Origin: Macrostomum hystrix
Taxonomy: Eukaryota; Animalia; Platyhelminthes
Reading direction: 5' to 3'
DNA length: 64,000 nt
Assembly: GCA_950097015.1 (NCBI GenBank)
Contig: CATNEN010000038.1
Location: 27,218,001 to 27,282,000 of the forward strand
This document shows positions 1 to 45,603 of this stretch, one piece after another. The position numbers were made by a program, and so were the translations under genes. Position 1 is the first letter of the stretch. The number at the start of each line of letters is the position of its first letter. The notes beneath the pieces were generated by a model. That model was not told where the DNA came from, made no database searches, and saw only the letters and a list, made by a program, of their open reading frames with translations.

Positions 1-328
1 AACGGCAGGTTTCACAATCACGCGGTTCAAAGCGAACCTTTAAGAGCCTTTTAAGTTAAAAGTGAACTTTTTTGCTGAAGTGTTGATTCATGCAAATCAT
101 GAAAACTGTTATTCATAAAAACTATTTTCTTGACTATGTTATATAGAAAGGCGAGATTTTATTCGATTTGTTACGCAAAAAGTATCTAAATTGTTTGAGT
201 TGAAATGAATAGTTGATTTTTAATAAAAAGCTAATTTAAAACAAACAAATATAAAGTTCGCATGCCAAGATTATTTCCTTGATGCAAAGACAATTAGCAG
301 CGCAGATTAGCAGACTCCTAATACTCAC

Positions 329-370
329 TTTGCACCAATGGGTCCTACTGAATACACTGCGGCTGTGGAC
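329..370 (-). CDS. 42-nt cytoplasmic micro-exon (STAAVYSVGPIGA)
   Basis: atgaccag| ... |GTGAGT, phase 2-2, open in frame. Confidence 0.6.
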
Positions 371-6300: not shown

Positions 6301-9300
6301 AGATTATTTAGAATGGGATTAGAGATTCGTTAGAATGGGATTTGAGATTCTTTAGAATGGGATTTGAGATTATTTAGAATGGGATTAGAGATTATTTAGA
6401 ATGGGATTAGAGATTATTTAGAATGGGATTAGAGATTATTTAGAATGGGATTAGAGATTATTTAGAATGGGATTAGAGATTCGTTAGAATGGGATTAGAT
6501 ATTATTTAGAATGGGATTAGAGATTCGTTAGAATGGGATTTGAGATTCTTTAGAATGGGATTTGAGATGATTTAGAATGGGATTAGAGATTATTTAGAAT
6601 GGGATTAGAGATTATTTAGAATGGGATTAGAGATTCGTTAGAATGGGATTAGATATTATTTAGAATGGGATTAGAGATTCGTTAGAATGGGATTTGAGAT
6701 TCTTTAGAATGGGATTTGAGATGATTTAGAATGGGATTAGAGATTATTTAGAATGGGATTAGAGATTATTTAGAATGGGATTAGAGATTCTTTAGAATGG
6801 GATTTGAGATGATTTAGAATGGGATTTGAGATGATTTAGAATATGATTTGAGATTATTTAGAATGGGATTAGAGATTATTTAGAATGGGATTAGAGATTC
6901 TTTAGAATGGGATTTGAGATGATTTAGAATGGGATTTGAGATTATTAGAATGGGATTAGAGATGATTTAGAATGGGATTTGAGATGATTTAGAATGGGAT
7001 TAGAGATTATTTAGAATGGGATTAGAGATTATTTAGAATGGGATTAGAGATTCTTTAGAATGGGATTTGAGATGATTTAGAATGGGATTTGAGATTATTT
7101 AGAATGGGATTAGAGATTTACTTAGAATGGGATTAGAGATTATTTAGAATAGGATTAGATATTAGTTAGAATGGGATTAGAGATTATTTAGAATGGGATT
7201 AGAGATTATTTAGAATGGGATTTGAGATTATTTAGAATGGGATTAGAGATGATTTAGAATGGGATTAGAGATGATTTAGAATGGGATTAGAGATGATTTA
7301 GAATGGGATTAGAGATTATTTAGAATGGGATAGAAGTTTATATAGAATAGAATTATATATTCAGGAGAACAGATTAGCTGATTTTTGATGACTTAAATCG
7401 CGGCCAATAAAGAATAAAAAAGAAAGCACACAACATTTTTTGTTGAAAAACTGTCTGAAAAACTGAAAAACAAAAAATTGTCCTGTCTGAAAAACAGGAC
7501 AATGGACTTTCGACTTTCAAAAAGCAGAAAATTTAGTCTCACCTATTGGTATCTGAAAAGTCACCATTTCTATCGCGATGTGGTCTGAAATTCAAACAAA
7601 AAAATGAACAGTAATGACTAAATATTGCAAAGATTCATGCAAACATGTAGGTTAAAAAATAATGTTGAATTTACAGAGAATACCATGCAAAGTTTTCGAT
7701 CTGAAATTCAACAACTTTTCAAGACAAACACAATCTCACTCCTCATTTGTACTTTGAACAACTACCGATTCCAATCCATGCTGGTCTTTGTACAGCTACC
7801 CACCTGACTCCTCTCTGCTGGTCTTTGTAAACAGCTACCCCAATTCCCTTCTCGCTGGTCTTTGTAAACGATTCACGTCACTCTTCTCTTGTCTTTGTAC
7901 ACTGTCAACCACCTCACTCCTCGCTTGTCTTTGTACACTGTCAACCACCTCACTCCTCGCTTGTCTTTGTACACTGTCAACCACCTCACTCCTCGCTTGT
8001 CCTTGTACACTGTCAACCACCTCACTCCTCGCTTGTCTTTGTACACTGTCAACCACCTCACTCCTCGCTTGTCTTTGTACACTGTCAACCACCTCACCCT
8101 TTTCTGTTCTTTGTACACAGCTACTCTTCCAAGATTTTAAAAGACAGAGAGGGTGCGAAAGGGACAGAGAAGGTCAAATAGGGTGGGAAAGGGACAGACA
8201 AGGTCAGAGAGGGTGCGAATTACAGCGGAATAAAAGCGCTTACCTCTTCATGCACCGTCCAAGCTCGTCGCGCCGTTTTATAGCCAGGATAACAAGGATG
8301 ACAATGAGCAGGGCAAACAGAACGGCTCCAATGACGCCGCCAATAATTTGGCGCAGAGTATAATTGAAGCCAGTGGTGAATCGGATGTCTCCGTCGGACA
8401 TGGTGCAGCCGTTGGTGGTGCAAGCTACTAGATACACTCGATACGGCTGTTCATAAGCCAGCGGCCCGTTGCAATGGCCGATGCAGGCGTCCGAAGCGTC
8501 GCCAATGACGAAAGTCGACATAGGATCGCTGGATGCTGCGGAGAAGCGCATCGACAATGAAGAGAACAAGGAGGAGGTCGGCGAGGCTGCTGCAGTGCGC
8601 TGGCTGCAGCTAACATTGAAGGTATAGGGATGCTTGTAGCCGCGGTCGCTGCCGTCGTAATTTCGATTGCCGCCGAGCGTCCAATCGGCGTCGCTAAAAA
8701 TGTCGCGACCAACTAGAAGGCTACAGTAGCGAATCACACCGAAGCTGTCGTTGAATGCTCGCGAGAAGCCGTCCAAACTGATCGTGGCTTTATCGTGGCC
8801 TACCAGCTGCACGTTCGCCGTGTCCTGAAAGAGAACAAAAATAGGTGTGTCCCGGGAGTGAGGTGGGTGCCACTGGAGCGAGGAGGGTGTCACAGGGATG
8901 AGGTAGATGTCACTGGATTGAGGTGGCTGTCACTGGAGTGAGGTGGCTGTCACTGGAGTGAGGAGTATATCAGCCGAATGGTCACTGAATGTGCAAAAAA
9001 GTAACAAGCTAGCAGTTGGTAAATGCTTACCTGCAAATCAACACCGAGAACGCGGAACGCTTTGCCAGGCTTAATAACTACAATGTTGCTCTGAACCTCA
9101 AGGCCAGGGTTTGGACTTTCAGGCGTGTTGACAAGCAGAGCAGCGAAGGTGAGGCTGATATCCGGCTTGATATAGGCTACACTGCTAATGTCTAGCTCCA
9201 GTTTGGAAGCATTGAATGGCAGTGATTCGCTGACGCTCACACCCGGAGGCGCGCTTGTCAAACGAAGTACATAACGAATCGGTACTCCGTTACGCCGAAG

Positions 9301-12300
9301 TGGCTCTACCCAGGAGCAGCGGACCCGATTGTAAAAATCAGGCAAAGTCACGCAGCTCAAATTCTGCGGCGGGTCGGCCTTATCAGGCGAAGTGCGAGAC
9401 ACGACTTCGCTGGCGACAATGGCGCTAGTAGAGATACCGTTAAAACTGACCGTAGCTTGAACGGAAAAACTGTACCAGGTGAATGGCTGCAGGTACTGTG
9501 CCAAGTAACTGGGTGAGACTACATTATAAAAGCCGGAATAATTCTGGTTTACAGTGTAAGTCACTAGGCATATGCCGTGAGTAACAGGTAACCAGGTTAG
9601 ACTAATCGATGAAGAATTCAGAACGGTTGTGTTAACGTTTGGAGAAACAATGCTGCTTGTAAGGTTGCCAATTTTTGTGGCTCCATTGGCCCTCGACGTG
9701 CTGCTATTGCTGTAGTTATTCTCGGTAAACAAAGTGAACTCGTAGTTTGAGACGCACTGTGTCAGGTTTGAGACGCGATATTCCTGATGAGGAGTGTGAT
9801 AACAGAGCTCTGCGTTACAAAGCAATTCGGTATATCAAAAGAACAAAAAACAAAATACTCGTTTACCAAAAAACTATATGTAAAATATGCAAAAAGTTCA
9901 ATACGTAAAGTATTTTTACAAGGAAACCTAGGCTATAATTGCTAATTTATTTTCAATAATGAGCCACGATGACTCACATGCTATTTTTAGAAATAATGCC
10001 ATGTGACGTAAAACTGGAGAACCAAATTTCGAGAGCTAATTTTGTAATGCTGACCACGAGAACCGACAAAACGCAGCTAAACAAACAAGTTAGACCGCAC
10101 TGTGCAAACATGAGTGGCCTAAGTAAACATCCGGTGCTAAACAGTTTTTCCAGAAAAAATTACAATAAAAACTAGTTAAAATCTGAACTGAAGTCCACCG
10201 GACTTCAAAGAAGTTTTATGAAGAAGAAGAGAACTCATCTGTCAGGTAAGCGCTATACTAGGCCGAGTTATTTTTTGCTAGCAATTGTTGGTGAATGGAA
10301 CTACGTTCACGAGAGCCACATATCGTCGATACATTTGACAAAGGCCTCCTTATCTCCTAGGATACAATTTTAGAGGATGATTGATTGATTTGAGTTATCC
10401 GTTATCTTTCGGAGGTAACGAAGAAGACGCCCTTTCAATAGTTCACTAGGGCACACGTTTCTATTGTGAATTCCGAGCTCGAGGAAACCGACAAGTAATC
10501 TGATTCGCTCTCGTTCCTTATTGGCCAACAGATAATTCAAGCGCAACAGACAGGATCGCTGCTAATCGTTTGAATTTACGCAAAAAACGCGAATTATACT
10601 CACATTGGTAGAATAGCTGCTAATCGTTATCCACTGATCAGTGGTGGGACTGAAAAAAGCGTGCAGCCAATAGCGCTTAAACTCTCCATTTAGAGTAGCG
10701 GGAGGAACCCAACGCAGGATGGCATATGTATCTTCAATTTGATGGACAACTAGAGATCCGGGAGCGTCCGGGGTGTCCGGCAAAGTGCGCTCCGTCAGGC
10801 TGATGCTGTTACCGGCAAGAGTTTGACTGACTGGCGTCACTGACACACTGTAGTTGGCCCAAGGAACTAGGCCGGTTAGATTTAAAACAATGTCCAAAGC
10901 CGCGTTGAACTCAAGCGAATTACGACCAAGGCAGTCAGCCAGCAACTGGTCAACAGTGGCGCTCACATTGCAGGCATCTGGTAGGTCTAGTTCGCAACTT
11001 AGGTTAAGATTCAAATAGTAGCCACTGAGGCAAGAGCCGCTACTGTTTGCTAGGCGAACGGCGTAGGCCATGATGCGACCGTTGGGCGCAGTGGGTCGAC
11101 TAAAGTTCAGTCGCATCTGACGCTTATCAGGCTGCAAGCCAACTAAACTGACTGGCCCGCTTGGTAGCTCGAGAGTTCGCGAGGTGGCATTCGACTTTAC
11201 TAGGCCCGGTCCGGCCCTATTTAGTGGCCACACACTGACACGGTAACGAGTGTTGGGCTGTAGGACATCCCCAGTGTCTCGTGACAACTCTGTATTGCTT
11301 TTGCTGTAGCTCACATTTGCAACGTCTGAGCAGCCGGTGAGAATGGCCGCTGTACGATCAGGTGAGTGCACACGGCTGCAGTCGATGCAGATGAAACGCG
11401 CCGCGTACGTGCAGTTGCCGACATTGCCAACGCTATCGAGCGAATCCAAGCGCAAAGCGTACTCAAATATATAGCCTTTGCTAAACTCAACTGTATTCCA
11501 GTTGAGAACAACACCTCTGCCTCTGCGCGCAGCAAATCTAGGAGTCAAGCTTTGCTCAGGTGGTAGATCGTCTAACAGCTTGGGCGGACTGGTCTCTACG
11601 CTTCTTAAACCTTCGCCTATAGTAGTCCACGCGCTGACGTCACAGCTGTACAGCACACCCGCGGACAGATTTGTTACGTTCTGATTGGTCGATGTGGCGT
11701 TGACAGTTGAGTTCAAGCCCATACTAGAGTAGCAGCGCACAGTGTAGGCAATGATCTGTCCGTTCGGTTGTTCGGGTGGCGACCACGAAATCTGCAGCCA
11801 TTCGGCGCCGTTGCTAATTATGCTGGCCCCAGTCGGTTGACTCGGTTTGTCCTGGAGTGTTGACTGCCACACAGCCGGTGCAGTTATTGAAACGCGATCG
11901 AAATACCTGGCCAGGTACTGCAGCGAATAGTTAGTGTAAGGAGTCAACCCGGCGAAGTTGAACGAGCAGGACTGCGCCCAGAATGAGCAATTCTGCTCGG
12001 ATAGAAAGACTCCGGATGAGTTGAACAGTCTCGCAGTTAGAAGCTGAGACAGGGACGTTGCAATGAGCAGTACTGTGAGCTGCCTACTTTGAATATCCGC
12101 CCAAGACTGAGTAGGGACACTGGGATCTAAAGTAAGGAATTGAAATAAATGGCGATATTTTAACAGATTATTATTCAGAGAAGAAAACTTAGTTTCAGGA
12201 AAAATGAATTTGCAGCTCATACTCACCAGTGTACTGTATGGCTGAGTAGGAGTCTGAGCTGTTCTGAACTAGACTAGCCTTTTCAGCCACTGCCACAGCA

Positions 12301-15300
12301 CTGATGGTGGCATTGTCTGAGTAAGAAAAACTACCTCGGAATACAATTGAATAATTGCTAAATGGCACATTTCGATATACGTTCAATCTAGCTGATTTGA
12401 GATCGATGATTAGCGAATCGGCGCCGATAGCGAAACTAGAATTCCAAGAAACAGTGAGCTCAGAATTGGCTGCATTTGTTGCATCTAACTTGAAGGCTGT
12501 TGTAAACGAGGAGCTACTGGCAATTAAACGTGGCTCTGAAATTCATGAAGGTGGTCAGTGACTCAGGTGGGTGATAGAGGTGGTGAGTGACTCAGGTGGG
12601 TGACAGAGGTGGTCAGTGACTCAGGTGGGTGACAGAGGTGGTCAGTGACTCAGGTGGGTGAAAGAGGTGGTCAGTGATTCAGGTGGGTGACAGAGGTGGT
12701 CAGTGACTCAGGTGGGTGACAGAGGTGGTCAGTGACTCAGGTGGGTGATAGAGGTGGTGAGTGACTCAGGTGGGTGACAGAGGTGGTCAGTGACTCAGGT
12801 GGGTGACAGAGGTGGTCAGTGATTCAGGTGGGTGACAGAGGTGGTCAGTGACTCAGGTAGGTGACAGAGGTGGTCAGTGACTCAGGCGGGTGACAGAGGT
12901 GGTCAGTGACTCAGGTGGGTGACAGAGGTGGTCAGTGACTCAGGTGGGTGACAGAGGTGGTCAGTGACTCAAGTGGGTGACAGGACAGTGACTTCAGTCA
13001 GCAAGATCAGCAAAGGACGCAATGTCAATGAGGACAGATTAATAACCCACTCGTCAGAGCAGTTGACGTAGCCGGCACTGAGTTGCTAAAGCCGAACTTC
13101 GCGACGACAATTGTTATTGCCAGAACAGTTCCAGGATTGAAGCCCGTCTGGTTTAAGTGAGTTGCCGTCGTGTTCAAACTAACATGTCCTATTGTAACAT
13201 TGTAGAATACATTCTGACTGGCAGACGGACTCCAGTTGACAGAGACACTCTCGAAGGTTGACCTCCAAATTATGGAAGAATTGCTGACTGGAGACAAATC
13301 TGTGAAGAGCGGAAGAAATGCGAAATAAATTATATTGTATAGCCTTTATACAATTTTTTTACTTTATTAAACTTCAAAACCTACAAGCACCACTGCAATA
13401 AATGCAAACACACAAAAGCCACTTACGAGTCTTGCCAGTGGACATTGTGGCTACACTATCATTAAAGCCTCCTTTTTTGACTACTATGGAGACATTGTGA
13501 CTCTCGCCTGACTGCAGGTTGCAGCAGGAGCCAGACAGACTTGTGGCTGCATTAATCGTAGAATTTGAGCCACAGGTGAGCTCGTAGCTCACTCCCGATG
13601 TGTTCGACATAGTCCATGACACATCAAGACAGGTCTCATTGGAACCCGTCACACTCACGCTTGTCACTGGTGACACCACTGGAAAGCGAGAAGCGATTGC
13701 AATGTGTGTAAAGTAGCAATAACAAAACTGACAATAGTCTACACATTTCCCAGATACAGAACTGATTGGGTGATACGAAAGTTTCAACCGAACTAAAACT
13801 AAATAATGAAGACCAATCTGACTCCGATGATCAGCAGGTAAGAGAAAATTATCACAAAAAGCTGGTACATTAAGCATAGGACTATTGCAGAAATCCATAC
13901 TTGAAATCTGATCGTGGACTATCAAAAATGTTTCATCTAGTCAGCGAAAAACGAGATAGGGGAAAAAGGAAATAAATTGCAGCTTTACAAAAAATTGTAT
14001 CAATGGAAATTAATCGTTACTATGGGATTTAATTGATACTATGGAATAGAATTGATACTATGGAATAGAATTGTTACTATGGAATAGAATTGATACTATG
14101 GAAAAGAATTGATACTATGGGATTTAATTGATACTATGGAATAGAATGGATACTATGGAATGGAATTGTTACTATGGAATAGAATTGATACTATAATAAT
14201 AAAAAAAATAATAATTGCAGGAAGGCTGCGGGCAATGACACATAGTTTGGTGACACTAGACCCGCAGCCAGCGAGGAGGCAATTCTGCCCATTTCGCTGA
14301 CTCCTGAGCACACACGCACACAGATACCGTACTCAGGCATACGCTCACACAGGTGTGTACATCTGCCCTGACTTTCTCATCGTCAGGCAGTGTACACTCG
14401 AACTGTGCCTTGGAGGTTGGCCCTCAAGGGCGTAAATTGCACAACAAGCCCCAAAGCCTTCTCTCCGCGGCTGCGCCCCAAATAAATGTGGCCTCGCCGT
14501 GGAATCGAACTTAGGGACTGTGGTGCGAGTGGCAAACGCGTAAACCGCTCTGCCACCGACCCCCTGAATTGATACTATGGAATAGAATTGATACTATGGG
14601 ATAGAATTGATACTATGGAATAGAATTGTTACCATGGAATAGAATTGATACTATGGAATGGAATTGATACTATGGATGAGAATTGATGCTAAAGAAACGA
14701 ATTGTCACTATGGAATTGAATTGTTACTCAATTATAAATAAGATATTCATCAGTAACATCTAAGAATTCAACAGCTCCATTTTAAATTCAATCGCTGTAG
14801 AACCGACAGACAACGCATCAAATTTTGATGCACAGAAATCAATCGGGAAGAACCGATGGCCCCTTTAAGTTGCAAATTAAAGGACAATGATCGGGTTACA
14901 TTGGAGCTGCAACGAGCATCAAGCATAGTGCTAGGCGAAACTGTTCAAGCCTTGAAAACCAAAACAGCTGCATGGGTAGTAGCGTGGCGTACCTAGCAGC
15001 AAAGCAGCAATTATTGCACACCATAAATATTGGTTTCTACGCTACAGTTGTCGACAGTGATGACCAGGCAACTATGGTCAACAAAACATCAGTAATAATG
15101 CCAATTGCTCGATCAGCAAGACGTTGGCGCATTCTCAATCAAATCAATTATTAGATATCGTGACTAATGATATACACAGGCCGTAAATCGAACTGACTGC
15201 AACTTGCGAATAACTCCACCAACAACCAATCGGTAGTTTCAAAGAAATCGCTGATTAACATTACTGATTCTCAGGCTAATTCAATACACGCTGCAATCAG

Positions 15301-18300
15301 TGCGAACACGACCGAAGCAACACAAACTCAAACTTACGGGTCTTGCCAGTGGACATTGTAGCTACACTATCATTAAAGCCTCCTTTTTTGACTACTATGA
15401 AGACATTGTGACTCTCGCCTGACTGCAGGTTGCAGCAGGAGCCAGACAGACTTGTGGATGCATTGATCGGAGAATTTGAGCCACAGGTGAGCTGGTAGCT
15501 CACTCCCGATGTGTTCGACATAGCCCATGACACATCAAGACAGGTTTCATTGGAGCCCGTCACACTCACGCTTGTCACTGGTGACACCACTGGAAAGCGG
15601 GAAGCGATTGCAATGTGTGTAAAGTGGCAATAACAAAACGGACAATAGTCTACACATTTCCCAGATACAGAACTGATTGGGTGATACGAAAGTTTCAACC
15701 GAACTAAAACTAAATAAATGAAGACCAATCTGACTCCGATGATCAGCAGGTAAGAGGAAATTATCACAAAAAGCTGTTACATTAAGCACAGGGCCATTGC
15801 AGAAATCCATACTTAAAATCTGCTCGTGGACTGTCAAAAATGTTTCATCTAGTCAGCGAAAAACGAGATAGGGGAAAAAGGAAATAAATTGCAGCTTTAA
15901 AAATCATTGTATCAATGGAAATTAATAGTTACTATGGGATTGAATTGATACTATGGAATGGAATTGATACTATAAAATAGAATTGATACTATGGAATGGA
16001 ATTGTTTCTATGGAATAGAATTGATACTATGGAATAGAATTGATACTATGGAATAGACTTGATACTATGGAATAGAATTGATACAATAGAATCGAATTGA
16101 TGCTAAAGAAACGAATTGTTACTATGGAATCAAATTGTTACTCAAGTATAAATAAGATATTCATCAGTGACGTCTAAGAATTCAACAGCTCCATTTTTAA
16201 TTCAATCGCTGTAGAACCGACGGACAACGCATCAAATTTTGATGCACAGAAATCAATCGGGAAGAACCGATGGCCCCTTTAAGTTGCAAATTAAAGGACA
16301 ATGATCGGGTTACATTGGAGCTGCAACGAGCATCAAGCATAGTGCTAGGCGAAACTGTTCAAGCCTTGAAAACGAAAACAGCTGCATGGGTAGTAGCGTG
16401 GCGTACCTAGCAGCAAAGCAGCAATTATTGCACACCATAAATATTGGTTTCTACGCTACAGTTGTCGACAGTGATGACCAGGCAACTATGGTCAACAAAA
16501 CATCAGTAATAATGCCAATTGCTCGATCAGCAAGACGTTGGCGCATTCTCAATCAAATCAATTATTAGATATCGTGACTAATGATATACACAGGTCGAAA
16601 ATCGAACTGACTGCAACTTGCGAATAACTCCACCAACAACCAATCGGTAGTTTCAAAGAAATCGCTGATTAACATTACTGATTCTCAGGCTAATTCAATA
16701 CACGCTGCAATCAGTGCGAACACGACCGAAGCAACACAAACTCAAACTTACGGGTCTTGCCAGTGGACATTGTAGCTACACTATCATTAAAGCCTCCTTT
16801 TTTGACTACTATGAAGACATTGTGACTCTCGCCTGACTGCAGGTTGCAGCAGGAGCCAGACAGACTTGTGGATGCATTGATCGGAGAATTTGAGCCACAG
16901 GTGAGCTGGTAGCTCACTCCCGATGTGTTCGACATAGCCCATGACACATCAAGACAGGTTTCATTGGAACCCGTCACACTCACGCTTGTCACTGGTGACA
17001 CCACTGGAAAGCGAGAAGCGATAACAATGTGCCTTAACTGGCTCTAACAAAACCTACAACGAACTTAACACAGTTTCCACAGAAATTTTAAGATTCAAAA
17101 CGTGCCGCTTAAAAAGTCTGATGAAATGAAAATTAATGCCTTTCAGCGAGCCTTGAAAGCGAACCACAACAGCCCATTCGGCTTCGAGCTCTATAAAATT
17201 ACTTAATCGCATATTATTTAAATCCTGTTTTAAGTACTCATTTCGAAACTCTCATTTGGAAAGGATAAATGCTATGGTACTGTTTGGTTCCCAAAGACGC
17301 TGCCAAAGCATTCTTAATCGGGGGCACGTTGCTGATAGCCTTAGCTATCTGTCGACGCGTTGAAGACCCAAAGCAAAAATCAAACAGCATGAAAACTAGC
17401 AAACAAACTCGAAGAGCGTGAACTATAAAAAATCAAGAAAGCTATTTATGCAGCACACGGCATCCGCTAGTACAAAAAGTCAATCAGCTAATTAAAGTCC
17501 TTTCTAAAGCTTGTGATGAACGAAAAAAGGTGACAGAAGCTAAGTGCACGTCCCATTTTGCACATTTAAAGAACACGAAAATCAAGCGACTTTTGGGAAA
17601 GCGCTGCTACTTCAAGCTAATGATTCTACCGAAAATTCACACCACTGCAAACAACGCGAACGCTTCACAAGCCACACAAACTTACGGGTCTTGCCAGTGG
17701 ACATTGTGGCTACACTATCATTAAAGCCTCCTTTTTTGACTACTACGGAGACATTGTGACTCTCGCCTGACTGCAGGTTGCAGCAGGAGCCAGACAGACT
17801 TGCGGATGCATGGATCGGAGAATTTGAGCCACAGGTGAGCTGGTAGCTCACTCCTGATGTGTTCGACATAGCCCATGACACATCAAGACAGGTCTCATTG
17901 GAACCCGTCACACTCACGCTTGTCACTGGTGACACCACTGGAAAGCAAGAAGCGATTGCAATGTGTGTAAAGTGGCAATAACAAAACTGACAATAGTCTA
18001 CACATTTCCCAGATACAGAACTGATTGGGTGATACGAAAGTTTCAACCGAACTAAAACTATATAAATGAAGACCAATCTGACTCCGATGATCAGCAGGTA
18101 AGATGAAATTATAACAAAAAGCTGTTACATTAAGCACAGGGCTATTGCAGAAATCCATACTTAAAATCTGCTCGTGGACTGTCAAAAATGTTTCATCTAG
18201 TCAGCGAAAAACGAGATAAGGGAAAAAGGAAATAAATTGCAGCTTTACAAATAATTGTATCAATGGAAATTAATCGTTACTATGGGATTTAATTGATACT

Positions 18301-21300
18301 ATGGAATAGAATTGTTACTATGGAATAGAATTGATACTATGGAATAGAATTGATACTATGGAATGGAATTGATATTATGGAATCGAATTGATACTATGGA
18401 ATCGATTTGATACTATTGAATAGAATTGATACTATGGAATGGAATTGTTACAATGGAATAGAATTGATACTATGGAATGGAATTGTTACTATGGAATAGA
18501 ATTGATACTATGGAATGGAATTGTTACTATGGAATAGAATTGATACTATAATAATAATAATAATAATAATAATTGCAGGAGGGCTGCGGGCAATGACACA
18601 TAGTTTGGTGACACTAGACCCGCAGCCAGCGAGGAGGCAATTCTGCCCATTTCGCTGACTCCTGAGCACACACGCACACAGATACCGTACGCAGGCATAC
18701 GCTCACACAGGTGTGTACATCTGCCGTTGCTTTCTCATCGTCAGGCAGTGTACAGTCGAACTGTGCCTTGGAGATTGGCCCTCAAGGGCGTAAATTGCAC
18801 GACAAGCCCCCAAGCCTTCTCTACGCGGCTGCGCCCCAAATAAATGTGGCCTCGCCGTGGAATCGAACTTAGGGACTGTCGTGCGAGTGGCAAACGCGTT
18901 AACCGCTCTGCCACCGACCCCCTGAATTGATACTATGGAATAGAATTGATACTATGGAATAGAATTGATACTATGGAATAGAATTGTTACCATGGAATAG
19001 AATTCATACTATGGAATAGACTTGATACTCTGGAATAGAATTGATGCTAAAGAAACGAATTGTTAATATGGAATCAAATTGTTACTCAAGTATAAATAAG
19101 ATATTCATCAGTGACGTCTAAGAATTCAACAGCTCCATTTTTAATTCAATCGCTGTAGAACCGACAGACAACGCATCAAATTTTGATGCACAGAAATCAA
19201 TCGGGAAGAACCGATGGCCCCTTTAAGTTGCAAATTAAAGGACAATGATCGGGTTACATTGGAGCTGCAACGAGCATCAAGCATAGTGCTAGGCGAAACT
19301 GTTCAAGCCTTGAAAACGAAAACAGCTGCATGGGTAGTAGCGTGGCGTACCTAGCAGCAAAGCAGCAATTATTGCACACCATAAATATTGGTTTCTACGC
19401 TACAGTTGTCGACAGTGATGACCAGGCAACTATGGTCAACAAAACATCAGTAATAATGCCAATTGCTCGATCAGCAAGACGTTGGCGCATTCTCAATCAA
19501 ATCAATTATTAGATATCGTGACTAATGATATACACAGGCCGTAAATCGAACTAACTGCAACTTGCGAATAACTCCACCAACAATCAATCGGTAGTTTCAA
19601 AGAAATCGCTGATTAACATTACTGATTCTCAGGCTAATTCAATACACGCTGCAATCAGTGCGAACACGACCGAAGCAACACAAACTCAAACTTACGGGTC
19701 TTGCCAGTGGACATTGTGGCTACACTGTCATTAAAGCCTCCTTTTTTGACTACTATGAAGACATTGTGACTCTCGCCTGACTGCAGGTTGCAGCAGGAGC
19801 CAGACAGACTTGTGGATGCATTGATCGGAGAATTTGAGCCACAGGTGAGCTGGTAGCTCACTCCCGATGTGTTCGACATAGCCCATGACACATCAAGACA
19901 GGTTTCATTGGAACCCGTCACACTCACGCTTGTCACTGGTGACACCACTGGAAAGCGAGAAGCGATAACAATGTGCCTTAACTGGCTCTAACAAAACCTA
20001 CAACGAACTTAACACAGTTTCCACAGAAATTTTAAGATTCAAAACGTGCCGCTTAAAAAGTCTGATGAAATGAAAATTAATGCCTTTCAGCGAGCCTTGA
20101 AAGCGAACCACAACAGCCCATTCGGCTTCGAGCTCTATAAAATTACTTAATCGCATATTATTTAAATCCTGTTTTAAGTACTCATTTCGAAACTCTCATT
20201 TGGAAAGGATAAATGCTATGGTACTGTTTGGTTCCCAAAGACGCTGCCAAAGCATTCTTAATCGGGGGCACGTTGCTGATAGCCTTAGCTATCTGTCGAC
20301 GCGTTGAAGACCCAAAGCAAAAATCAAACAGCATGAAAACTAGCAAACAAACTCGAAGAGCGTGAACTATAAAAAATCAAGAAAGCTATTTATGCAGCAC
20401 ACGGCATCCGCTAGTACAAAAAGTCAATCAGCTAATTAAAGTCCTTTCTAAAGCTTGTGATGAACGAAAAAAGGTGACAGAAGCTAAGTGCACGTCCCAT
20501 TTTGCACATTTAAAGAACACGAAAATCAAGCGACTTTTGGGAAAGCGCTGCTACTTCAAGCTAATGATTCTACCGAAAATTCACACCACTGCAAACAACG
20601 CGAACGCTTCACAAGCCACACAAACTTACGGGTCTTGCCAGTGGACATTGTGGCTACACTATCATTAAAGCCTCCTTTTTTGACTACTACGGAGACATTG
20701 TGACTCTCGCCTGACTGCAGGTTGCAGCAGGAGCCAGACAGACTTGCGGATGCATGGATCGGAGAATTTGAGCCACAGGTGAGCTGGTAGCTCACTCCTG
20801 ATGTGTTCGACATAGCCCATGACACATCAAGACAGGTCTCATTGGAACCCGTCACACTCACGCTTGTCACTGGTGACACCACTGGAAAGCAAGAAGCGAT
20901 TGCAATGTGTGTAAAGTGGCAATAACAAAACTGACAATAGTCTACACATTTCCCAGATACAGAACTGATTGGGTGATACGAAAGTTTCAACCGAACTAAA
21001 ACTAAATAATGAAGACCAATCTGACTCCGATGATCAGCAGGTAAGAGGAAATTATCACAAAAAGCTGTTACATTAAGCACAGGGCTATTGCAGAAATCCA
21101 TACTTAAAATCTGCTCGTGGACTGTCAAAAAGGTTTCATCTAGTCAGCTAAAAATGAGATCGGGGAAAAAGGAAATAAATTGCAGCTTTAAAAATCATAG
21201 TATCAATGGAAATTAATCGTTACTATGGGATTTAATTGATACTATGGAATAGAATTGATACTATGGAATAGAATTGTTACTATGGAATAGAATTGGTACT

Positions 21301-24300
21301 ATGGAATAGAATTGATACTATGGAATAGAATTGTTACTATGGAATAGAATTGATACTATGGAATAGAATTGATACAACGGAATAGAATTGTTGCTATGGA
21401 ATGGAATTGTTACTTTGGAATGGAATTGTTGCTATGGAATGGAATTGTTACTATGGAATCAAATTGTTACTATGGAATGTGATTGATACTATGGAATGGA
21501 ATTGATACTATGGAATAGAATTGTTACTATGGAATAGAATTGGTACTATGGAATAGAATTGATACTATGGAATAGAATTGTTACTATGGAATAGAATTGA
21601 TACTATGGAATAGAATTGATACAACGGAATAGAATTGTTGCTATGGAATGGAATTGTTACTTTGGAATGGAATTGTTGCTATGGAATGGAATTGTTACTA
21701 TGGAATCAAATTGTTACTATGGAATGTGATTGATACTATGGAATAGAATTGATACTATGGAATAGAATTGTTACTATGGAATAGAATTGATACTATGGAA
21801 TAGAATTGATACAATAGAATCGAATTGATGCTAAAGAAACGAATTGATGCTAAAGAAACGAATTGTTACTATGGAATCAAATTGTTACTCAAGTATAAAT
21901 AAGATATTCATCAGTGACGTCTAAGAATTCAACAGCTCCATTTTTAATTCAATCGCTGTAGAACCGACGGACAACGCATCAAATTTTGATGCACAGAAAT
22001 CAATCGGGAAGAACCGATGGCCCCTTTAAGTTGCAAATTAAAGGACAATGATCGGGTTACATTGGAGCTGCAACGAGCATCAAGCATAGTGCTAGGCGAA
22101 ACTGTTCAAGCCTTGAAAACCAAAACAGCTGCATGGGTAGTAGCGTGGCGTATCTAGCAGCAAAGCAGCAATTATTGCACACCATAAATATTGGTTTCTA
22201 CGCTACAGTTGTCGACAGTGATGACCAGGCAACTATGGTCAACAAAACAACAGTAATAATGCCAATTGCTCGATCAGCAAGACGTTGGCGCATTCTCAAT
22301 CAAATCAATTATTAGATATCGTGACTAATGATATACACAGGCCGTAAATCGAACTGACTGCAACTTGCGAATAACTCCACCAACAATCAATCGGTAGTTT
22401 CAAAGAAATCGCTGATTAACATTACTGATTCTCAGGCTAATTCAATACACGCTGCAATCAATGCGAACACGACCGAAGCAGCACAAACTTGAACTTACGG
22501 GTCTTGCCAATTGCTGTTCCGGCTACACTATCATTAAAGCCTCCTTTTTTGACTACTATGAAGACATTGTGACTCTCGCCTGACTGCAGGTTGCAGCAGG
22601 AGCCAGACAGACTTGTGGATGCATGGATCGGAGAATTTGAGCCACAGGTGAGCTGGTAGCTCACTCCCGATGTGTTCGACATAGCCCATGACACATCAAG
22701 ACAGGTTTCATTGGAGCCCGTCACACTCACGCTTGTCACTGGTGACACCACTGGAAAGCGAGAAGCGATTGCAATGTGTGAAAAGTGGCACAGTTTTCAT
22801 TTCGCAACTTTTTGGATTCCCATTTAGCAGTCAAAAATCTGATGCGTGCACTATTCACGCTTTGTTTTTTTAACAAAGCCTTTTGCCGAGGAGACTAAAA
22901 ATGCAGGTGTAGTTTGTTGGTGTGATTTCTATATTTTATCGAACTTAGTTAAGAGACTAGCAAGTTTTGCCCCCCTTCGGGGAGCAGAAATACTTTTAAT
23001 TCGTCTAGTATATACTTTTTAGCAGCTGAATTTACAGCTTTTTAAAGCTACAATGAACCACCAGTTGGCAATGATCCCCCAGTTGATGATGATCCCCCAG
23101 TTGATGATGATCCCCCAGTTGACAATGATCCCCCAGTTGACAATGAACCCCCGGTTGACAATGATCCCCCAGTTGACAATGATCCCCCAGTTGACAATGA
23201 TCCCCAGTTGACAATGATCCCCAGTTGACAATGATCCCACAGTTGACAATGATCCCCCAGTTGACAAAATCCCCCAGTTCACAATGAACCCCCAGTTGAC
23301 AACGATCCCCCAGTTGATAATGATCCCCCAGTTGATGATGATCCCCCAGTTGACAATGATCCCCCAGTTGACAATGAACCCCCGGTTGACAATGATCCCC
23401 CAGTTGACAATGATCCCCCAGTTGACAATGATCCCCCAGTTGACAATGATCCCACAGTTGACAATGATCCCCCAGTTGGCAAATATCCCCCAGTTCACAA
23501 TGAACCCCCAGTTGACAACGATCCACCAGTTGACAATGATCCCCCAGTTGACAATGATCCCCCAGTTGACAATGATCCCACAGTTGACAATGATCCCCCA
23601 GTTGACAATGATCCCCCAGTTGACAATGATCCCCCAGTTCACAATGATCCCCCAGTTGATGATGATCCCCCAGTGGATGATGATCCCCCAGTTAATGATG
23701 ATCACCCAGTTGACAATGATCCCCAAGTTGACAATGATCCCCCAGTTGACAATTATCCCCCAGTTTACCATGATCCCCCAGTTGACGATTATCCCCCAGT
23801 TGACCATTACCCCCTAGTTGACAATGATCCCCCAGTTGACAATGATCCCCCAGTTGACAATGATCCCCCAGTTGACAATGATCCCCCAGTTGACAATGAT
23901 CCCCCAGTTGACAATGATCCCCCAGTTGACAATGATCCCCCAGTTGACAATGATCCCCCAGTTGACAATGATCCCCCAGTTGACAATGATCCCCCAGTTG
24001 ACAATGATCCCCCAGTTGACAATTATCCCCCAGTTTACCATGATCCCCCAGTTGACGATTATCCCCCAGTTCACCATGATCCCCATTTTGATGATGACTC
24101 CCCAGTTGACGTTGATTTTTCAAACGCTGGGTTAGCCAAGATTCAAACTCAGGTTTCGCCATGTTTTAAACCCTGGTGGGCTATGATTCAAACTCTGGTT
24201 TAGCCATGATTCAAACTCTGGTTTAGCCATGATTCAAACTCTGGTTTAGCCATGATTCAAACGCTGGGTTAGCCATGATTGAAACTCGGTTTTTGCCATG

Positions 24301-27300
24301 ATTCAAACTAGCCATGCTGATGATGATGGTTTAGCCATGATTCAAAGCCTGGTGTAGCCATGATTTAGTCTCTGGTTTAGCCATGATTCAAACTCTGGTT
24401 TAGCCATGATTCAGACGCTGGTTTAGCCATGATTCAGACGCTGGTTTAGCTATGATTTAGTCTCTGGTTTAGCCATGATTCAGACTCTAGTTTAGCCATG
24501 ATTCAGACTCTGGTTTAGCCATGATTCAGACTCTAGTTTAGCCATGATTCAAGATCTGGTTTAGCCATGATTCAAACTCTGGTTTAGCCATGATTCAAAC
24601 TCTGGTTTAGCCATGATTCAAACTCTGGTTTAGCCATGATTCAGACGCTGGTTTAGCCATGATTCAGACGCTGGTTTAGCTATGATTTAGTCTCTGGTTT
24701 AGCTATGATTTAGTCTCTGGTTTAGCCATGATTTAGTCTCTAGTTTAGCCATGATTCAGACTCTAGTTTAGCCATGATTCAGACTCTGGTTTAGCCATGA
24801 TTCAGACTCTGGTTTAGCCATGATTCAAGATCTGGTTTAGCCATGATTCAAATTCTGGTTTAGCCATGATTGAAACTCGGTTTTTGCCATGATTCAAACT
24901 CTGGTTTAGCCATGCTGATGATGATGGTTTAGCCATGATTCAAAGCCTGGTGTAGCCATGATTTAGTCTCTGGTTTAGCCATGATTCAAACTCTGGTTTA
25001 GCCATGATTCAGACGCTGGTTTAGCCATGATTCAGACGCTGGTTTAGCTATGATTTAGTCTCTGGTTTAGCCATGATTCAGACTCTGGTTTAGCCATGAT
25101 TCAGACTCTAGTTTAGCCATGATTCAAGATCTGGTTTAGCCATGATTCAAACTCTGGTTTAGCCATGATTCAAACTCTGGTTTAGCCATGATTCAAACTC
25201 TGGTTTAGCCATGATTCAGACGCTGGTTTAGCCATGATTCAGACGCTGGTTTAGCCATGATTCAGACGCTGGTTTAGCTATGATTTAGTCTCTGGTTTAG
25301 CCATGATTCAGACTCTAGTTTAGCCATGATTCAGACTCTGGTTTAGCCATGATTCAGACTCTAGTTTAGCGATGATTCAAGATCTGGTTTAGCCATGATT
25401 CAAATTCTGGTTTAGCCATGATTCAAACTCTGGTTTAGCCATGATTCAAACTGTGGTTTAGCCATGATTCAAAATCTGGTTTAGCCATGATTCAGACGCT
25501 GGTTTAGCCATGATTCAGACTCTGGTTTAGCCATGATGCAGACTCTGGTTTAGCCATGATTCAGACTATGGTTTAGCCATGATTCAGACTCTGGTTTAGC
25601 CATGATTCAGACTCTGGTTTAGCCATGATTCAGACTATGGTTTAGCCATGATTCAGACTCTGGTTTAGCCATGATTCAGACTCTGGTTTAGCCATGATTT
25701 AAATTCTGGTTAAGCCATGATTCAGACTCTGGTTTAGCCATGATTCAAACTCTGGTTAAGCCATGATTCAGACTCTGGTTTAGCCATGATTTAAATTCTG
25801 GTTAAGCCATGATTCAGACTCTGGCTTAGCCATGATTCAAACTCTAGTTTAGCCATGATTCAGACTCTGGTTTAGCCATGATTCAGACTCTAGTTTAGCC
25901 ATGATTCAAGATCTGGTTTAGCCATGATTCAAATTCTGGTTTAGCCATGATTCAAACTCTGGTTTAGCCATGATTCAAACTGTGGTTTAGCCATGATTCA
26001 AACTCTGGTTTAGCCATGATTCAGACGCTGGTTTAGCCATGATTCAGACGCTGGTTTAGCCATGATTCAGACTCTGGTTTAGCCATGATTCAGACTCTGG
26101 TTTAGCCATGATTCAGACTCTGGTTGAGCCATGATTCAGACTCTGGTTTAGCCATGATTCAGACTCTGGTTTAGCCATGATTCAGACTCTGGTTTAGCCA
26201 TGATTCAGACGCTGGTTTAGCCATGATTCAGACGCTGGTTTAGCCATGATTCAAACTCTGTTTTAACCATGATTCAAACTCTGGTTTAGCCATGATTCAA
26301 ACTCTGGTTTAGCCATGATTCAAACTCTGGTTTAGCCATGATTCAAACTCTGGTTTAGCCATGATTCAAACTCTGGTTTAGCCATGATTCAAACTCAGAT
26401 TTGCTATGATTTATGATATTTTATTTACGAAATGAAAAAAATAAATTAAAATAATCTTCAATCACTACTGGCTAAAAATTCGTCTAAATGATTTGACGCA
26501 GTGCAGAATCGAACCCTAGCCTAGCCTAACTTATTCCCAGTGCCTACACATCGGCTATTCCGACTGTTGGTTAGTGGGTGAAAAATCAGCCTTATAAAAT
26601 GAATTTTCAAAGTTCTGGCTTTGTACAATGAAGTAAGAAAATAGAGTACACTTAGTCTCGCGGTTGGTTGTGTACATTTATTTCAAATTTGTCTCCAGAG
26701 TGCAGGCTTCAAATTCAATCAGCTAGGGGTTGTTGCGCAATTTCTCTCCGCGGCTGCGCCACAATTTAATGTGGCCTCACTGCGGAATCGAGCTCAGGGA
26801 CCTTGGTGTGAGAGGTAGACGTGGTAACCGATCTGGCACTGACCCCCTAGTTAAGACCTTCTAATACTTTATAACTGAGTAGGCACCTTTTCGTGCGAAA
26901 AATGTGCTAGCACTAGCAATTGATACACATTAGTCACATGTGACACTTGGATAAAATTTACTAGACTCCAGTGATGAATAAATACACTGCGGAAAATCGC
27001 TAACTGCTAAATACAATGTTTATTAGATAAATTTATTATCAACTTCAAATATAGCATTTTATACGTTGAAAATATATTCAGCGTATTGATACTTCGTATG
27101 ATAGATCGTTGTGGCTTGTCAAACTAGAACATATTTTAGCGAATTCATGTTCCTAATTTAAATTTTAGAGACTATACGAGTATTAAAGGTATCCTAGATG
27201 CGTTAAAAGATGCATACCTAGTGTTGGTTACTATAGCGCTGATTAGGAATATGCATATATACTCACACGTCTGACCGGAAGCGATTGCTGCAGAGCTGTT

Positions 27301-27672
27301 TGGATATCCAGTTGCCGTAGCAAAGACTGTAAAGTTGTAACTATTACCAGAATTCAGGCCAGTACAGTTGTATTCAGTGCTAGAAACATCGCAGTTATCG
27401 CTGGCTAGAGGACAGTTGACACAATATTTCACGCCCGTTGGATATGCACTCCGGCTAAACCAAGTTAAATAAACTGAGCTAACTGTTGCTTTTGCAGGAA
27501 CAGCAGAAATATTATGGACCGCTTCAAGCGGCGGTTTAGTTGTCGCAACGGTAGATGTCTGGACTTGAGTGGTTCCAACGGTTGTTGACGCGGTATTATG
27601 TAGCGGTGTCATGACAGCGAAAATCACGATCAGCAGCAAGTTGCTGACCGAATCGCTTAGGCTAAGCCGCAT
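329..27672 (-). CDS. Multi-exon FN3-repeat type I membrane receptor, R3 receptor protein tyrosine phosphatase-like (PTPRB/J/Q, Ptp10D family); 3' end runs off the left edge
   Basis: Phase-consistent GT-AG exons: 27672-27267 (signal peptide, Thr-rich stretch, FN3); seven 252-nt FN3 exons; 13299-13051; 12535-12227; 12126-10604; 9783-9031; 8824-8244; micro-exons 7584-7543, 3391-3365, 370-329. About 1900 codons in total. FN3 motifs include WSPPEQPNGQIIAYTV and LTPYTNYS. The juxtamembrane motif FVIG..C..HCNGPL...PYRVYL is typical of R3 RPTPs, followed by a TM helix IIGGVIGAVLFALLIVILVILAI-KRR. No phosphatase domain is seen inside the window. Confidence 0.85.
481..3170. repeat. 30-bp minisatellite (gagggtgcgaaagggacagacaaggtcaga), about 89 units, intronic
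   Basis: Direct tandem periodicity with a few recurrent variants (aggga/ggaga, gtc/gtg). Confidence 0.98.
3365..3391 (-). CDS. 27-nt cytoplasmic micro-exon (R-PWWYENGF)
   Basis: attttttag| ... |GTCAGT, phase 2-2, in the short unique island between two satellites. Confidence 0.55.
3487..7330. repeat. 22-bp minisatellite (gaatgggattagagattattta), about 170 units, intronic
   Basis: Tandem periodicity; variant blocks recur at 418-bp and 640-bp spacing. Confidence 0.98.
7543..7584 (-). CDS. 42-nt cytoplasmic micro-exon (R-PHRDRNGDFSDTN)
   Basis: tttgaatttcag| ... |GTGAGA, phase 2-2, continues the TM exon in frame. Confidence 0.7.
7880..8115. repeat. 36-bp minisatellite (tgtctttgtacactgtcaaccacctcactcctcgct), about 6 units
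   Basis: Tandem copies in intron 7585-8243. Confidence 0.92.
8244..8824 (-). CDS. Juxtamembrane and transmembrane exon of the receptor
   Basis: Acceptor ctttcag|GAC and donor AG|GTAAGC; CNGPL motif, 23-residue hydrophobic helix, then KRR. Confidence 0.88.
8850..8965. repeat. Degenerate 20-bp repeat (gtcactggagtgaggtggct) filling a 206-bp intron
   Basis: About 6 imperfect units. Confidence 0.75.
9031..9783 (-). CDS. FN3 exon of the receptor
   Basis: Acceptor catcag|GAA TAT and donor CAG|GTAAGC; motifs LQPFTWYSFSVQA and WVEPLRRNGVPIRY. Confidence 0.85.
10604..12126 (-). CDS. Large multi-FN3 exon of the receptor
   Basis: Acceptor ctttag|ATCCC and donor AAT|GTGAGT; several FN3 repeats within ORF 10562..12226. 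Confidence 0.88.
12548..12985. repeat. 29-bp minisatellite (gtggtcagtgactcaggtgggtgacagag), about 15 units
   Basis: Fills most of intron 12536-13050. Confidence 0.95.
13427..22750 (-). CDS. Array of seven near-identical 252-nt FN3 exons: 22750-22499, 20881-20630, 19947-19696, 17937-17686, 17003-16752, 15589-15338, 13678-13427
   Basis: Each has a ctttccag| acceptor and a C|GTAAGT donor, phase 1-1, and 84 open codons (VSPVTSVSVTGSNETCLDVSW...NLQSGESHNV..VVKKGGFNDSVA...GKT). Confidence 0.9.
14005..14725. repeat. 19-bp minisatellite (gaattgatactatggaata) interrupted by a SINE; paralogous arrays at about 15915-16140, 18265-19085 and 21205-21890
   Basis: Same unit in the equivalent intron of each duplicated cassette, with different copy numbers. 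Confidence 0.92.
14195..14564 (-). mobile_element. tRNA-derived SINE (family A)
   Basis: Minus strand begins GGGGGTCGGTGGCAGAGCGG (box A) ... GTTCGATTCC (box B) and ends in a (TTA)n tail; several copies in the window. Confidence 0.85.
18550..18922 (-). mobile_element. tRNA-derived SINE (family A), paralogous insertion
   Basis: Near-identical to 14195-14564 and in the same minisatellite context, with a (TTA)n tail. Confidence 0.85.
23050..24110. repeat. 18-bp minisatellite (gttgacaatgatccccca)
   Basis: About 58 tandem units in intron 1 of the receptor. Confidence 0.97.
24120..26410. repeat. 23-bp minisatellite (ctggtttagccatgattcaaact)
   Basis: About 100 tandem units directly abutting the 18-bp array, with internal block duplications. 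Confidence 0.97.
26743..26848 (-). mobile_element. SINE family A, 5' head fragment
   Basis: Matches the tRNA-like head of 14195-14564 (ggctgcgcc...gtggcctc...ggaatcga...gacccc). Confidence 0.7.
27267..27672 (-). CDS. First coding exon of the FN3 receptor (signal peptide, Thr-rich linker, Cys-containing FN3)
   Basis: ATG at 27672, hydrophobic LLLIVIFAV, motif TGLNSGNSYNFTVFA, donor ACGT|GTGAGT at 27266 (phase 1). Confidence 0.8.
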
Positions 27673-29129: not shown

Positions 29130-29990
29130 GTCCCTGATTACTTCACTCCCTCCTTGACTATTCCACTCCCTCCTTGACTACTCCACTCCCTCCTTGACTA
29201 CTCCACTCCCTCCTTGACTACTCCACTCCCTCCTTGACTATTCCACTCCCTCCTTGACTACTCCACTCCCTCCTTGACTACTCCACTCCCTCCTTGACTA
29301 CTCCACTCCCTCCTTGACTACTCCATTCCCTCCTTGACTACTCCACTCTCTCCTATAGACTACTCCACTCCCTTCTATAGACTACTCCACTCCCTTCTAG
29401 ACTACTCCACTCCCTCCTTGACTACTCCATTCCCTCCTTGACTACTCCACTCCCTCCTTGACTACTCCACTCCCTCCTTGACTACTCCACTCCCTCCTAT
29501 AGACTACTCCACTCCCTCCTATAGACTACTCCACTCCCTTCTATAGACTACTCCACTCCCTCCTATAGACTACTCCACTCCCTCCTATAGACTACTCCAC
29601 TCCCTCCTATAGACTAATCCACTCCCTCCTATAGACTACTCCACTCCCTTCTATAGACTACTCCACTCCCTCCTATAGACTACTCCACTCCCTCCTATAG
29701 ACTACTCCACTCCCTTCTATAGACTACTCCACTCCCTCCTATAGACTACTCCACTCCCTCCTATAGACTACTCCACTCCCTCCTATAGACTAATCCACTC
29801 CCTCCTATAGACTACTCCACTCCCTTCTATAGACTACTCCACTCCCTCCTATAGACTAATCCACTCCCTCCTATAGACTACTCCACTCCCTTCTATAGAC
29901 TACTCCACTCCCTCCTATAGACTACTCCACTCCCTTCTAGACTACTCCACTCCCTTCTAGACTACTCCACTCCGTCTAGACGTCTCCCTC
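29130..29990. repeat. 20/22-bp minisatellite (ctccactccctccttgacta changing to ctccactccctcctatagacta)
   Basis: Tandem array whose unit length shifts along its length. Confidence 0.95.
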
Positions 29991-35975: not shown

Positions 35976-36259
35976 AATATACAAAGCATAAAGGTTTGAG
36001 TATGCCGTGCATGTTATATTCATGAATATTTCGTAAAAACGCCGAAAAGGAACTGTTTTTCGCATCAATAGTCTTCCGGGAGTAGAATTGTTTCGTTTTG
36101 TCGCATGCCTTTTTATTGTAGTTATTGAGAAAATTATTAATAAAACTAGTACACTAAGCCCCCTTGGGGGAGCACTACTGTTCAGACAAAAAGTATTGTG
36201 TAATGCAGAAGGGCAAAACACACCTGAAAGTAAACAAAAACGAAAACTCGTTTCGTCAG

Positions 36260-36672
36260 TATGAATTTCCCTGCATGCCCTTCACGCTTTCACTTTAGAT
36301 AATTCGTGCAAGCTAGTTAAATAATTATGATATCCCTTGTTAATTTTGGTTTTCATCGATAATTCGTGAATTTACGTCGATAATTTTTCTTCCCTCAATA
36401 ATTCATGTTTTTCCCAAGATGGATCATTCTTTTCCCTCGAGAATTCATGCTTTTCCTTCGATAATTCGTGCTTTACCTCGATAACCTGGTTCCCCCCTCG
36501 ATAACTCATGATTCCCCTCGATAATTCATGCTACCCCACTTGATAATTAATGTTTTTTCTTCAATTGGTCATGCCACGTCGCTGATATTTCATACTTTCT
36601 CTCTAATAATTCAGGATTTACGGTTTTTTATTCATGCTTCCCCCTAGATAATTCATGCTATCCCTTCAATAA
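36260..36672. repeat. Degenerate ~22-bp repeat (gataattcatgct..cccctc); the same family recurs at about 42005-42330
   Basis: Recurrent ataattcatgct motif on both sides of the Gypsy-containing block. Confidence 0.75.
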
Positions 36673-39757: not shown

Positions 39758-39801
39758 CCGGAGACCCAGGCTTCACTGTAGTAACAGACCACCGACCACT
39801 C

Positions 39802-45530: not shown

Positions 45531-45603
45531 TGGGGGCGCAGCCGCAGAGACAGGGCTTGGGGGGCTGGCACACTGCCTGACGATAAAAAGTCAGGGCAGA
45601 TGT
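45531..45603 (+). mobile_element. SINE family A internal fragment
   Basis: Reverse-complement match to the body of 14195-14564 (ggggcgcagccgc...cactgcctgacgat...agtcagggcagatgta). Confidence 0.6.

Follow-up and report, generated by a model that had tools for sequence, protein, structure and literature searches.

A 64-kb stretch of the genome of the flatworm Macrostomum hystrix (contig C38, GenBank CATNEN010000038.1, positions 27218001-27282000; hereafter the window, to which all coordinates refer unless prefixed by C38) carries on its minus strand a gene for a putative receptor protein tyrosine phosphatase. Its extracellular region includes a tandem array of near-identical exons, each encoding a fibronectin type III (FN3) domain. 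The array spans positions 13427-22750 and consists of seven minus-strand exons, here termed cassettes C1 to C7, each exactly 252 nucleotides (nt) long and open throughout. Every cassette is bounded by the same acceptor (...cgctttccag/TG) and the same donor (...AAGAC(C/T)C/gtaagt), and all are phase 1-1, so that the first 2 nt finish a codon and the last 1 nt opens the next. The cassettes occupy positions 22499-22750 (C1), 20630-20881 (C2), 19696-19947 (C3), 17686-17937 (C4), 16752-17003 (C5), 15338-15589 (C6), and 13427-13678 (C7). They encode four protein variants: variant 1 (C1), variant 2 (C2 and C4, which are identical in DNA), variant 3 (C3, C5, and C6), and variant 4 (C7). Pairwise nucleotide differences amount to 0-17 of 252 (0-6.7%; 93-100% identity), and 22 of the 249 in-frame nucleotide positions vary across the cassettes. 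Seven copies this alike exclude chance, and a tblastn search of the whole window found no extra or decayed copies.

An initial annotation, made from the letters of the window, had described seven intact 252-nt phase 1-1 exons with near-identical splice sites, falling into four protein variants and placed directly after the first FN3 domain of a receptor. The description of the exons was correct in every point that could be checked, the four variants were borne out by the translations of the seven cassettes, and an exon for a signal peptide and the first FN3 domain does lie upstream of the array. The cassette splice sites (pyrimidine tract plus cag, gtaagt) conform to the splice consensus no less closely than do the sites of the neighboring exons. 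The two exons that follow the array, D1 and D2, are also phase 1-1 FN3 exons; frame symmetry is the rule in this gene, as it is in FN3 and Ig exons generally, and the array is not special for it.

The remainder of the gene was delineated by profile and structure searches, all run exon by exon. The first coding exon (U; 27267-27672) holds the start codon, a signal peptide, and a first FN3 domain (Pfam fn3, expect value (E) 0.0024, below the cut-off), and ends in phase 1 at the donor ACGT/gtgagt. Downstream of the array lie D1 (13051-13299; 249 nt), an FN3 exon without the cysteine pattern of the cassettes, and D2 (12227-12535; 309 nt), which is FN3-like. They are followed by a large multi-FN3 exon of about 1.56 kb (10565-12126; acceptor ...actttag/AT at 12126, the lower bound being the limit of the open reading frame) with three passing stretches for Pfam fn3 (E 8e-27). 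Two further minus-strand open frames, whose limits are those of the frames and not exon borders, contain one or more additional FN3 domains (8950-9825; Pfam fn3, 28 bits) and a membrane-proximal domain followed by a membrane span (IIGGVIGAVLFALLIVILVILAI) and the basic stop-transfer motif KRRDE (8243-8893). The latter frame also has a weak match to PF18861 PTP_tm (16.5 bits, E 0.01, below the cut-off of 26.3). Parts of these two frames are without any match; all Pfam matches of the ectodomain exons are of FN3 type (fn3 and Fn3_Dep-1_3rd), and no Ig, MAM, CA, or other ectodomain modules were found in any of these exons with Pfam.

A single protein tyrosine phosphatase (PTP) domain was found on the same strand in three exon pieces at C38:27215278-27216829, which places it 1.2-2.7 kb outside the window on the left. 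The pieces cover PF00102 profile positions 1-222 and retain an intact CX5R loop (HCSAGVGRTG). No second PTP domain was detected in the gene, the next PTP pieces being 43 kb away and part of another gene. For two of the PTP exons, the best single-domain chains in the PDB were those of PTPRJ (65-68 bits), then PTPRH and PTPRB (57-61 bits). The margins of PTPRJ over PTPRZ, PTPN7, and PTPN9 were small, and tandem-domain chains scored higher only through two summed stretches. The PTP domain halts at ...MVQTK/gtgagg, just left of the window. Known members of the R3 family have a C-terminal tyrosine motif (YxN-hydrophobic) after the PTP domain; an exon for the last ~12 PTP profile positions or for a C-terminal tail was not found within 5 kb by motif scan and comparison with a paralog, which has no conserved block there. 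Taken by its domain content, the gene is most likely an R3-type receptor tyrosine phosphatase with an FN3-only ectodomain, one membrane span, and one catalytic domain. The label "R3-RPTP-like" of the initial annotation thus holds, the PTP domain having been located beyond the left edge by profile search.

The array is probably a young, lineage-specific amplification in which the second FN3 exon of an R3-type phosphatase gene was multiplied in tandem, lengthening the stalk of the receptor. Repeated unequal recombination between repeat-rich introns would have multiplied a unit of exon plus intron, and the last step would have been the copying of a 2.9-kb two-exon block. Each cassette would add a four-cysteine FN3 module with 3-5 N-glycosylation sequons to the membrane-distal part of the ectodomain, just after the first FN3 domain. 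The outcome would be a longer and more glycosylated stalk, which six extra modules might extend by some 20 nm if each FN3 domain measures about 3.5 nm, and not a set of different binding specificities.

The introns of the array retain a record of how it may have grown. Among the 300 nt upstream of each cassette there are three sequence types, one shared by C2, C4, C6, and C7, one shared by C3 and C5 (identical), and one unique to C1. The 300 nt downstream also fall into three types, which are distributed differently: one is shared by C1, C3, C5, and C6, one by C2 and C4 (identical), and one is unique to C7. Self-BLAST revealed a minus-strand two-exon unit of ~2.94 kb that is present twice within 15980-21492 and 97.7% alike over 2570 nt. 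It consists of C2, a 682-nt intron, and C3 with part of the next intron, and its counterpart holds C4 and C5. The 682-nt introns of the two blocks are identical over the 300 nt adjoining each exon, and the duplication of this block is, judging from these alignments, the youngest event of the array. A mosaic of this kind is the trace expected from repeated unequal crossing-over, and we infer that this was the mechanism.

Repeats are abundant in the same introns. Intron 1 (22751-27266; 4516 nt) is made up mostly of two minisatellites identified with Tandem Repeats Finder, an 18-mer repeated 59 times (23050-24110) and a 23-mer repeated 100 times (24119-26411). The long introns between cassettes hold arrays of a 19-mer (TACTATGGAATAGAATTGA), with between 8.6 and 35.5 copies per array, at 14018-14728, 15930-16142, 18278-19086, and 21215-21889. 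The first and third of these are interrupted by a 373-bp interspersed repeat inserted at corresponding sites (14194-14566 and 18552-18924, respectively; 96% alike), so that the insertion predates the duplication of its unit. At first look, this repeat has at least 3620 candidate copies across the genome at 96-98% identity, as in a young family resembling short interspersed elements or miniature inverted-repeat transposable elements. A 60-codon plus-strand open frame recurs in the four long cassette introns (14972-15154, 16386-16568, 19330-19512, and 22133-22315), most likely as a side effect of duplicating this intron segment. Very long minisatellites (units of 18-30 nt, up to 100 copies) also occur at 453-3231, 7788-8140, 23050-26411, and 29139-29973, in the large introns of the gene and in neighboring DNA.

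These features raise the question of whether the number of cassettes is a heritable polymorphism generated by ongoing unequal crossing-over, comparable to that of LPA kringle IV-2, which would be compatible with a young amplification. Specifically, unit length is 0.9-2.9 kb at a similarity of 94-100%, the units lie beside unstable 19-mer minisatellites, the latest duplication shows no differences in its exons or intron flanks, and cassette counts differ between paralogs and between species. On the other hand, the locus is known from a single assembly, produced with PacBio and Illumina sequencing from a highly inbred line (F ~0.998) and accompanied by RNA-Seq and Iso-Seq data (PMC10468722), and short-read contigs cannot count copies. 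We therefore regard copy-number variation among animals as a possibility, although a rather unlikely one.

Transcription of the array was followed in three RNA-like sequencing runs (X3, X4, and X9), which consist of contigs assembled at k=31 and for which the order of near-identical cassettes is beyond resolution. Runs X3 and X4 behave as RNA, with depths of 15-63 over exons and 2-6 over introns. In them, spliced contigs of 2143 and 2831 nt cover D1 exactly and run on into D2. Contigs from X3, X4, and X9 all end exactly at the D1 borders 13051 and 13299, and the letters of the loose end at 13051 map to 12506-12535 in D2. The junction of U with the array is seen in X4, where a loose end at 17937 (the start of C4) maps to 27267-27296, the last 30 nt of U. 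Two contigs document joints between cassettes: in X3, a loose end at 17686 joins the end of C4 to TGGTGTCA, the start of a cassette, and a 206-nt contig of X9 (record 29) consists of the final 119 nt of a C5-type cassette followed directly by the initial 87 nt of a C4-type one. The array is transcribed and its cassettes are spliced head to tail. A choice of one cassette among many is excluded, since the RNA contigs join cassettes in series.

The exit from the array could be traced to a single cassette. The D1 contigs in X3 and X4 extend 32 nt beyond the exon, and judging from bin depths this overhang falls on 13427-13458, the end of C7 (for X4, 40 nt x 57.4 / 171 = 13.4, as observed). With k=31, an overhang of 32 nt denotes a sole predecessor carrying the T specific to C7 two bases before the junction; it would be 30 nt for the end of any of C2-C6 and 0 if D1 had a second predecessor. 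From the contig table, it appears that C7 is not detectably skipped and is the sole detected predecessor of D1 in these two runs. The initial annotation had proposed that any subset of cassettes could be skipped or joined without a frameshift. Phase 1-1 does keep every skip in frame, but "any subset" proved too strong, because C7 is the only detectable splice partner of D1.

If a fraction of the transcripts skipped one or more of C1-C6, whether by regulation or by chance, the result would be length isoforms with one to seven modules, in the manner of tenascin-C, whose single-exon FN3 repeats are alternatively spliced (PMC4422809). Besides the preserved frame, contig depths lend this some weight: contigs shared among cassettes reach 1.8 times the depth of the D1 contig in X4 and ~2.5 times in X3 (summed over places), and 2.8-3.8 times that of the C7-specific contig, as compared with 4.7 for the same measure in DNA, although contig depth is a poor measure of quantity. 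Converted into cassettes per mRNA, these depths give about 2.5-4 as opposed to seven. The deficit is equally explained by a decay of coverage toward the 5' end of a long mRNA, since the C7-specific contig is already at 0.64 of the depth of the D1 contig in both X3 and X4. Moreover, no U-to-D1 joint was seen in the X3 and X4 contigs and no skipping joint of any kind among the RNA-like contigs, from which rare isoforms may be missing, and the same consensus-like splice sites flank all cassettes. Some RNA contigs of 127 nt differ by 2 letters from every assembled copy, and no single cassette can be assigned to them. Altogether, we consider length isoforms unlikely, and most mRNAs would be expected to include all seven cassettes.

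The assembled array is supported by the DNA run X1. This run was read as short contigs and may derive from the sample of the assembly itself, which makes it the right control for over-expansion while being silent on other animals. Depth of X1 contigs was 66-77 on the single-copy flanks, 149-165 on the intron of the two-exon block (assembled twice), 252 on a long-intron segment shared four times in the assembly, and 338 on a contig at C5 that is shared among cassettes. These depths track the assembled copy number (1x, 2x, 3.5x, and 4.7x), which makes over-expansion of the array unlikely. A long-read assembler could have over-expanded a shorter array or merged haplotypes, near-identical tandem repeats being error-prone in assemblies, and C2 and C4 are indeed identical together with their flanks. 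However, given the depth pattern and the fact that the other copies show numerous substitutions relative to one another and do not all carry the 373-bp repeat, an artefact is very improbable.

At the protein level, each cassette corresponds to one FN3 domain, probably of the Dep-1 type: the three cassettes searched matched PF25300 (Fn3_Dep-1_3rd) at or just over the cut-off of 26 bits (C1, 26.1 bits; C2, 27.5 bits; C7, 28.2 bits). The predicted fold of C5 is FN3, and the single-cassette structure model (mean predicted local distance difference test score of 78) has seven strands and template modeling scores of 0.75-0.80 to solved FN3 domains. Four cysteines are found in each cassette, together with three invariant N-glycosylation sequons and none, one, or two variable ones, giving 3, 4, or 5 in total (three in C1 and five in C7). 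Protein identity among the cassettes is 88-100%; 13 of 83 residue positions vary and any two variants differ by at most 10 of 83. Mapped onto the model fold, the variable residues fall within strands B, C, C', F, and G and the C'-E turn; the loops by which FN3 domains usually bind (BC, DE, and FG) are invariant. Four of the 13 variable residues (P40T, H42N, S44A, and F63S, within module residues 38-44 and 61-63) make or destroy sequons.

The ratio of nonsynonymous to synonymous differences (pN/pS) was 0.3-0.8 in all informative pairs of cassettes, at a pS of 0.02-0.09, and differences between exons (0-6.7%) were no smaller than those between shared intron flanks (0-4.3%). Since the exons differ as much as the introns and pN/pS is in this range, the cassettes are young and weakly constrained. 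Diversifying selection was ruled out, pN/pS being below one in every informative pair. The same data bear on the suggestion of the initial annotation that the array might generate Dscam-type recognition diversity. In such a system, one cassette per transcript, or varied combinations, would present different recognition surfaces between cells, and an array of homologous exons in the distal part of a receptor, coding for four protein variants, would suit it. It is extremely improbable here, however: the joints in X3 and X9 contradict a mutually exclusive choice, no two variants differ by more than 10 residues, all variable positions lie outside the invariant BC, DE, and FG loops, pN/pS is below one, a single protein is shared by three cassettes, and two cassettes have the same DNA sequence.

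Relatives of the array were sought within and beyond this genome. In a search of 1.8 billion representative sequences, the closest proteins were fragments from Macrostomum lignano. One of these, the partial model PAA46194.1, is collinear with the gene described here and comprises a signal peptide, the first FN3 domain, one cassette, D1, D2, and the large exon; D1 is 53% identical to its residues 256-338 and D2 is 54% identical to its residues 340-441. Longer proteins retrieved by the same search were rejected as orthologs, as Pfam identified them as generic FN3 proteins. Homology searches with one cassette and with residues 95-340 of the M. lignano model gave no matches, a result of little weight that probably stems from the length window of the search. 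A tandem paralog is located ~45 kb downstream on the same strand (C38:27170998-27183761). It has a short ectodomain with three near-identical cassettes and one divergent cassette, which are 43-46% identical to those of the array; downstream of them come a membrane span and a PTP domain. In protein sequence, PTP exons two and three of the paralog match those of the present gene at 97-99% identity, whereas the introns do not align, a pattern that points to gene conversion of the catalytic exons or to their recent exchange between the paralogs. In a tree inferred from an 83-column alignment, cassettes grouped by gene; only two inner branches were well supported, and the group of the paralog is the well-supported gene group.

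Cassette number therefore differs between genes and species (seven here, three plus one in the paralog, and one in PAA46194.1), and this is the part that stands of the proposal in the initial annotation that an accordion-like system tunes ectodomain length. Comparison of these sequences supports the view that the length of the ectodomain changes through this exon over evolutionary time. Another cluster with such exons is found at C38:14.53-14.57 Mb. The hemichordate Glandiceps talaboti has a protein annotated as "fibronectin-like" (XP_078000500.1) with eight almost identical DEP-1-like FN3 repeats in tandem, which is an independent case of the same kind of burst. Considering the paralog, the cluster at 14.53-14.57 Mb, and the Glandiceps repeats, bursts of this FN3 exon are recurrent. 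No literature linking Macrostomum with receptor phosphatases was found in the collection of papers searched.

Four points weigh against a young amplification that is spliced in full into a longer receptor. First, no molecule spans the whole array, and inclusion of all seven cassettes in one mRNA is pieced together from separate joints. Second, the RNA-like runs contain only ~1.8-3.8 cassette equivalents as compared with 4.7 in DNA, which leaves room for partial skipping. Third, the single cassette of M. lignano comes from a partial annotated model, in which near-identical exons could be collapsed. Fourth, the gene model is incomplete at its 3' end, where the last PTP exon was not found.

The amplification can be placed among known systems. 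Among R3 receptor phosphatases (PTPRJ/DEP-1/CD148, PTPRB, PTPRH, PTPRO, and PTPRQ, and Drosophila Ptp10D and Ptp4E), FN3 repeats are old and divergent. The present gene is like them in its FN3-only ectodomain, one membrane span, and one PTP domain with HCSAGxGRTG; furthermore, the cassettes searched reach or just pass the cut-off of the Pfam model of the third FN3 domain of DEP-1, and PTPRJ leads, by small margins, among the single-domain PDB matches of two PTP exons. It differs in having seven adjacent repeats that are 88-100% identical in protein. For the array itself, the closest precedent is the A1-D region of tenascin-C, where single-exon FN3 repeats lie inside a longer FN3 string; here, too, each repeat has its own symmetric exon. 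The first four tenascin-C repeats of this region, A1-A4, share ~80% amino-acid identity and are possibly the result of duplication; the repeats of the region are alternatively spliced and number 6 in chicken and mouse, 7 in rat, and 9 in human (PMC4422809). However, tenascin-C is a secreted matrix protein with documented alternative inclusion, whereas the gene described here encodes a signaling receptor with far more similar copies.

The kringle IV-2 region of LPA is an exon-carrying variable number tandem repeat with established copy-number polymorphism. It resembles the array in its near-identical kilobase tandem units with whole in-frame exons, where unequal crossing-over shifts length in steps of one domain; it differs from the present array, in which every domain is encoded by a single exon and three intron types are mixed among the units. 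Mutually exclusive tandem exons, such as the Dscam clusters, have also been linked to tandem exon duplication (PMC9013439, PMC6071210), but in Dscam one strongly divergent exon enters each mRNA, as opposed to the near-identical cassettes joined in series here. With regard to function, size-dependent exclusion from close contacts is the accepted model for CD45 (PMC5676914). CD45 and CD148 are alike to the present receptor in placing a large, rigid, glycosylated ectodomain on a receptor phosphatase, and the work on them concerns vertebrate lymphocytes; we infer purely by analogy that ectodomain length could have a role in this flatworm receptor.

Duplicating symmetric exons is the textbook route by which receptors of this type lengthened their FN3 strings, and what is described here is an ordinary event in a known kind of gene. 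What distinguishes the locus is the very early stage at which such growth is observed: exons and introns have diverged to the same degree, the history of recombination is still legible in the intron mosaic, and a single copy is present in the partial model from a related species. It is thus a clean example of the evolution of domain number, with no new kind of molecule or mechanism. It is also conceivable, though doubtful, that the number of distal FN3 domains varies per receptor molecule, either between transcripts through skipping of C1-C6 or between animals through unequal crossing-over. If so, the locus would supply a natural series of R3 phosphatases that differ in stalk length only and, together with the short paralog and its nearly identical catalytic exons, a natural setting outside vertebrates for testing whether phosphatases are excluded from cell contacts according to size. 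Should length isoforms or copy-number variants exist, they would offer a simple system in which to ask whether the length of a phosphatase stalk matters.

Apart from the receptor gene, the window shows a strong guanine-cytosine skew at positions 1-8000. Three intronless paralogous genes (377-420 amino acids) with an N-terminal membrane anchor are located at 34842-49860 and were assigned on first reading to FkbM-type methyltransferases; a retroelement pol frame (37676-40848) lies between two of them.

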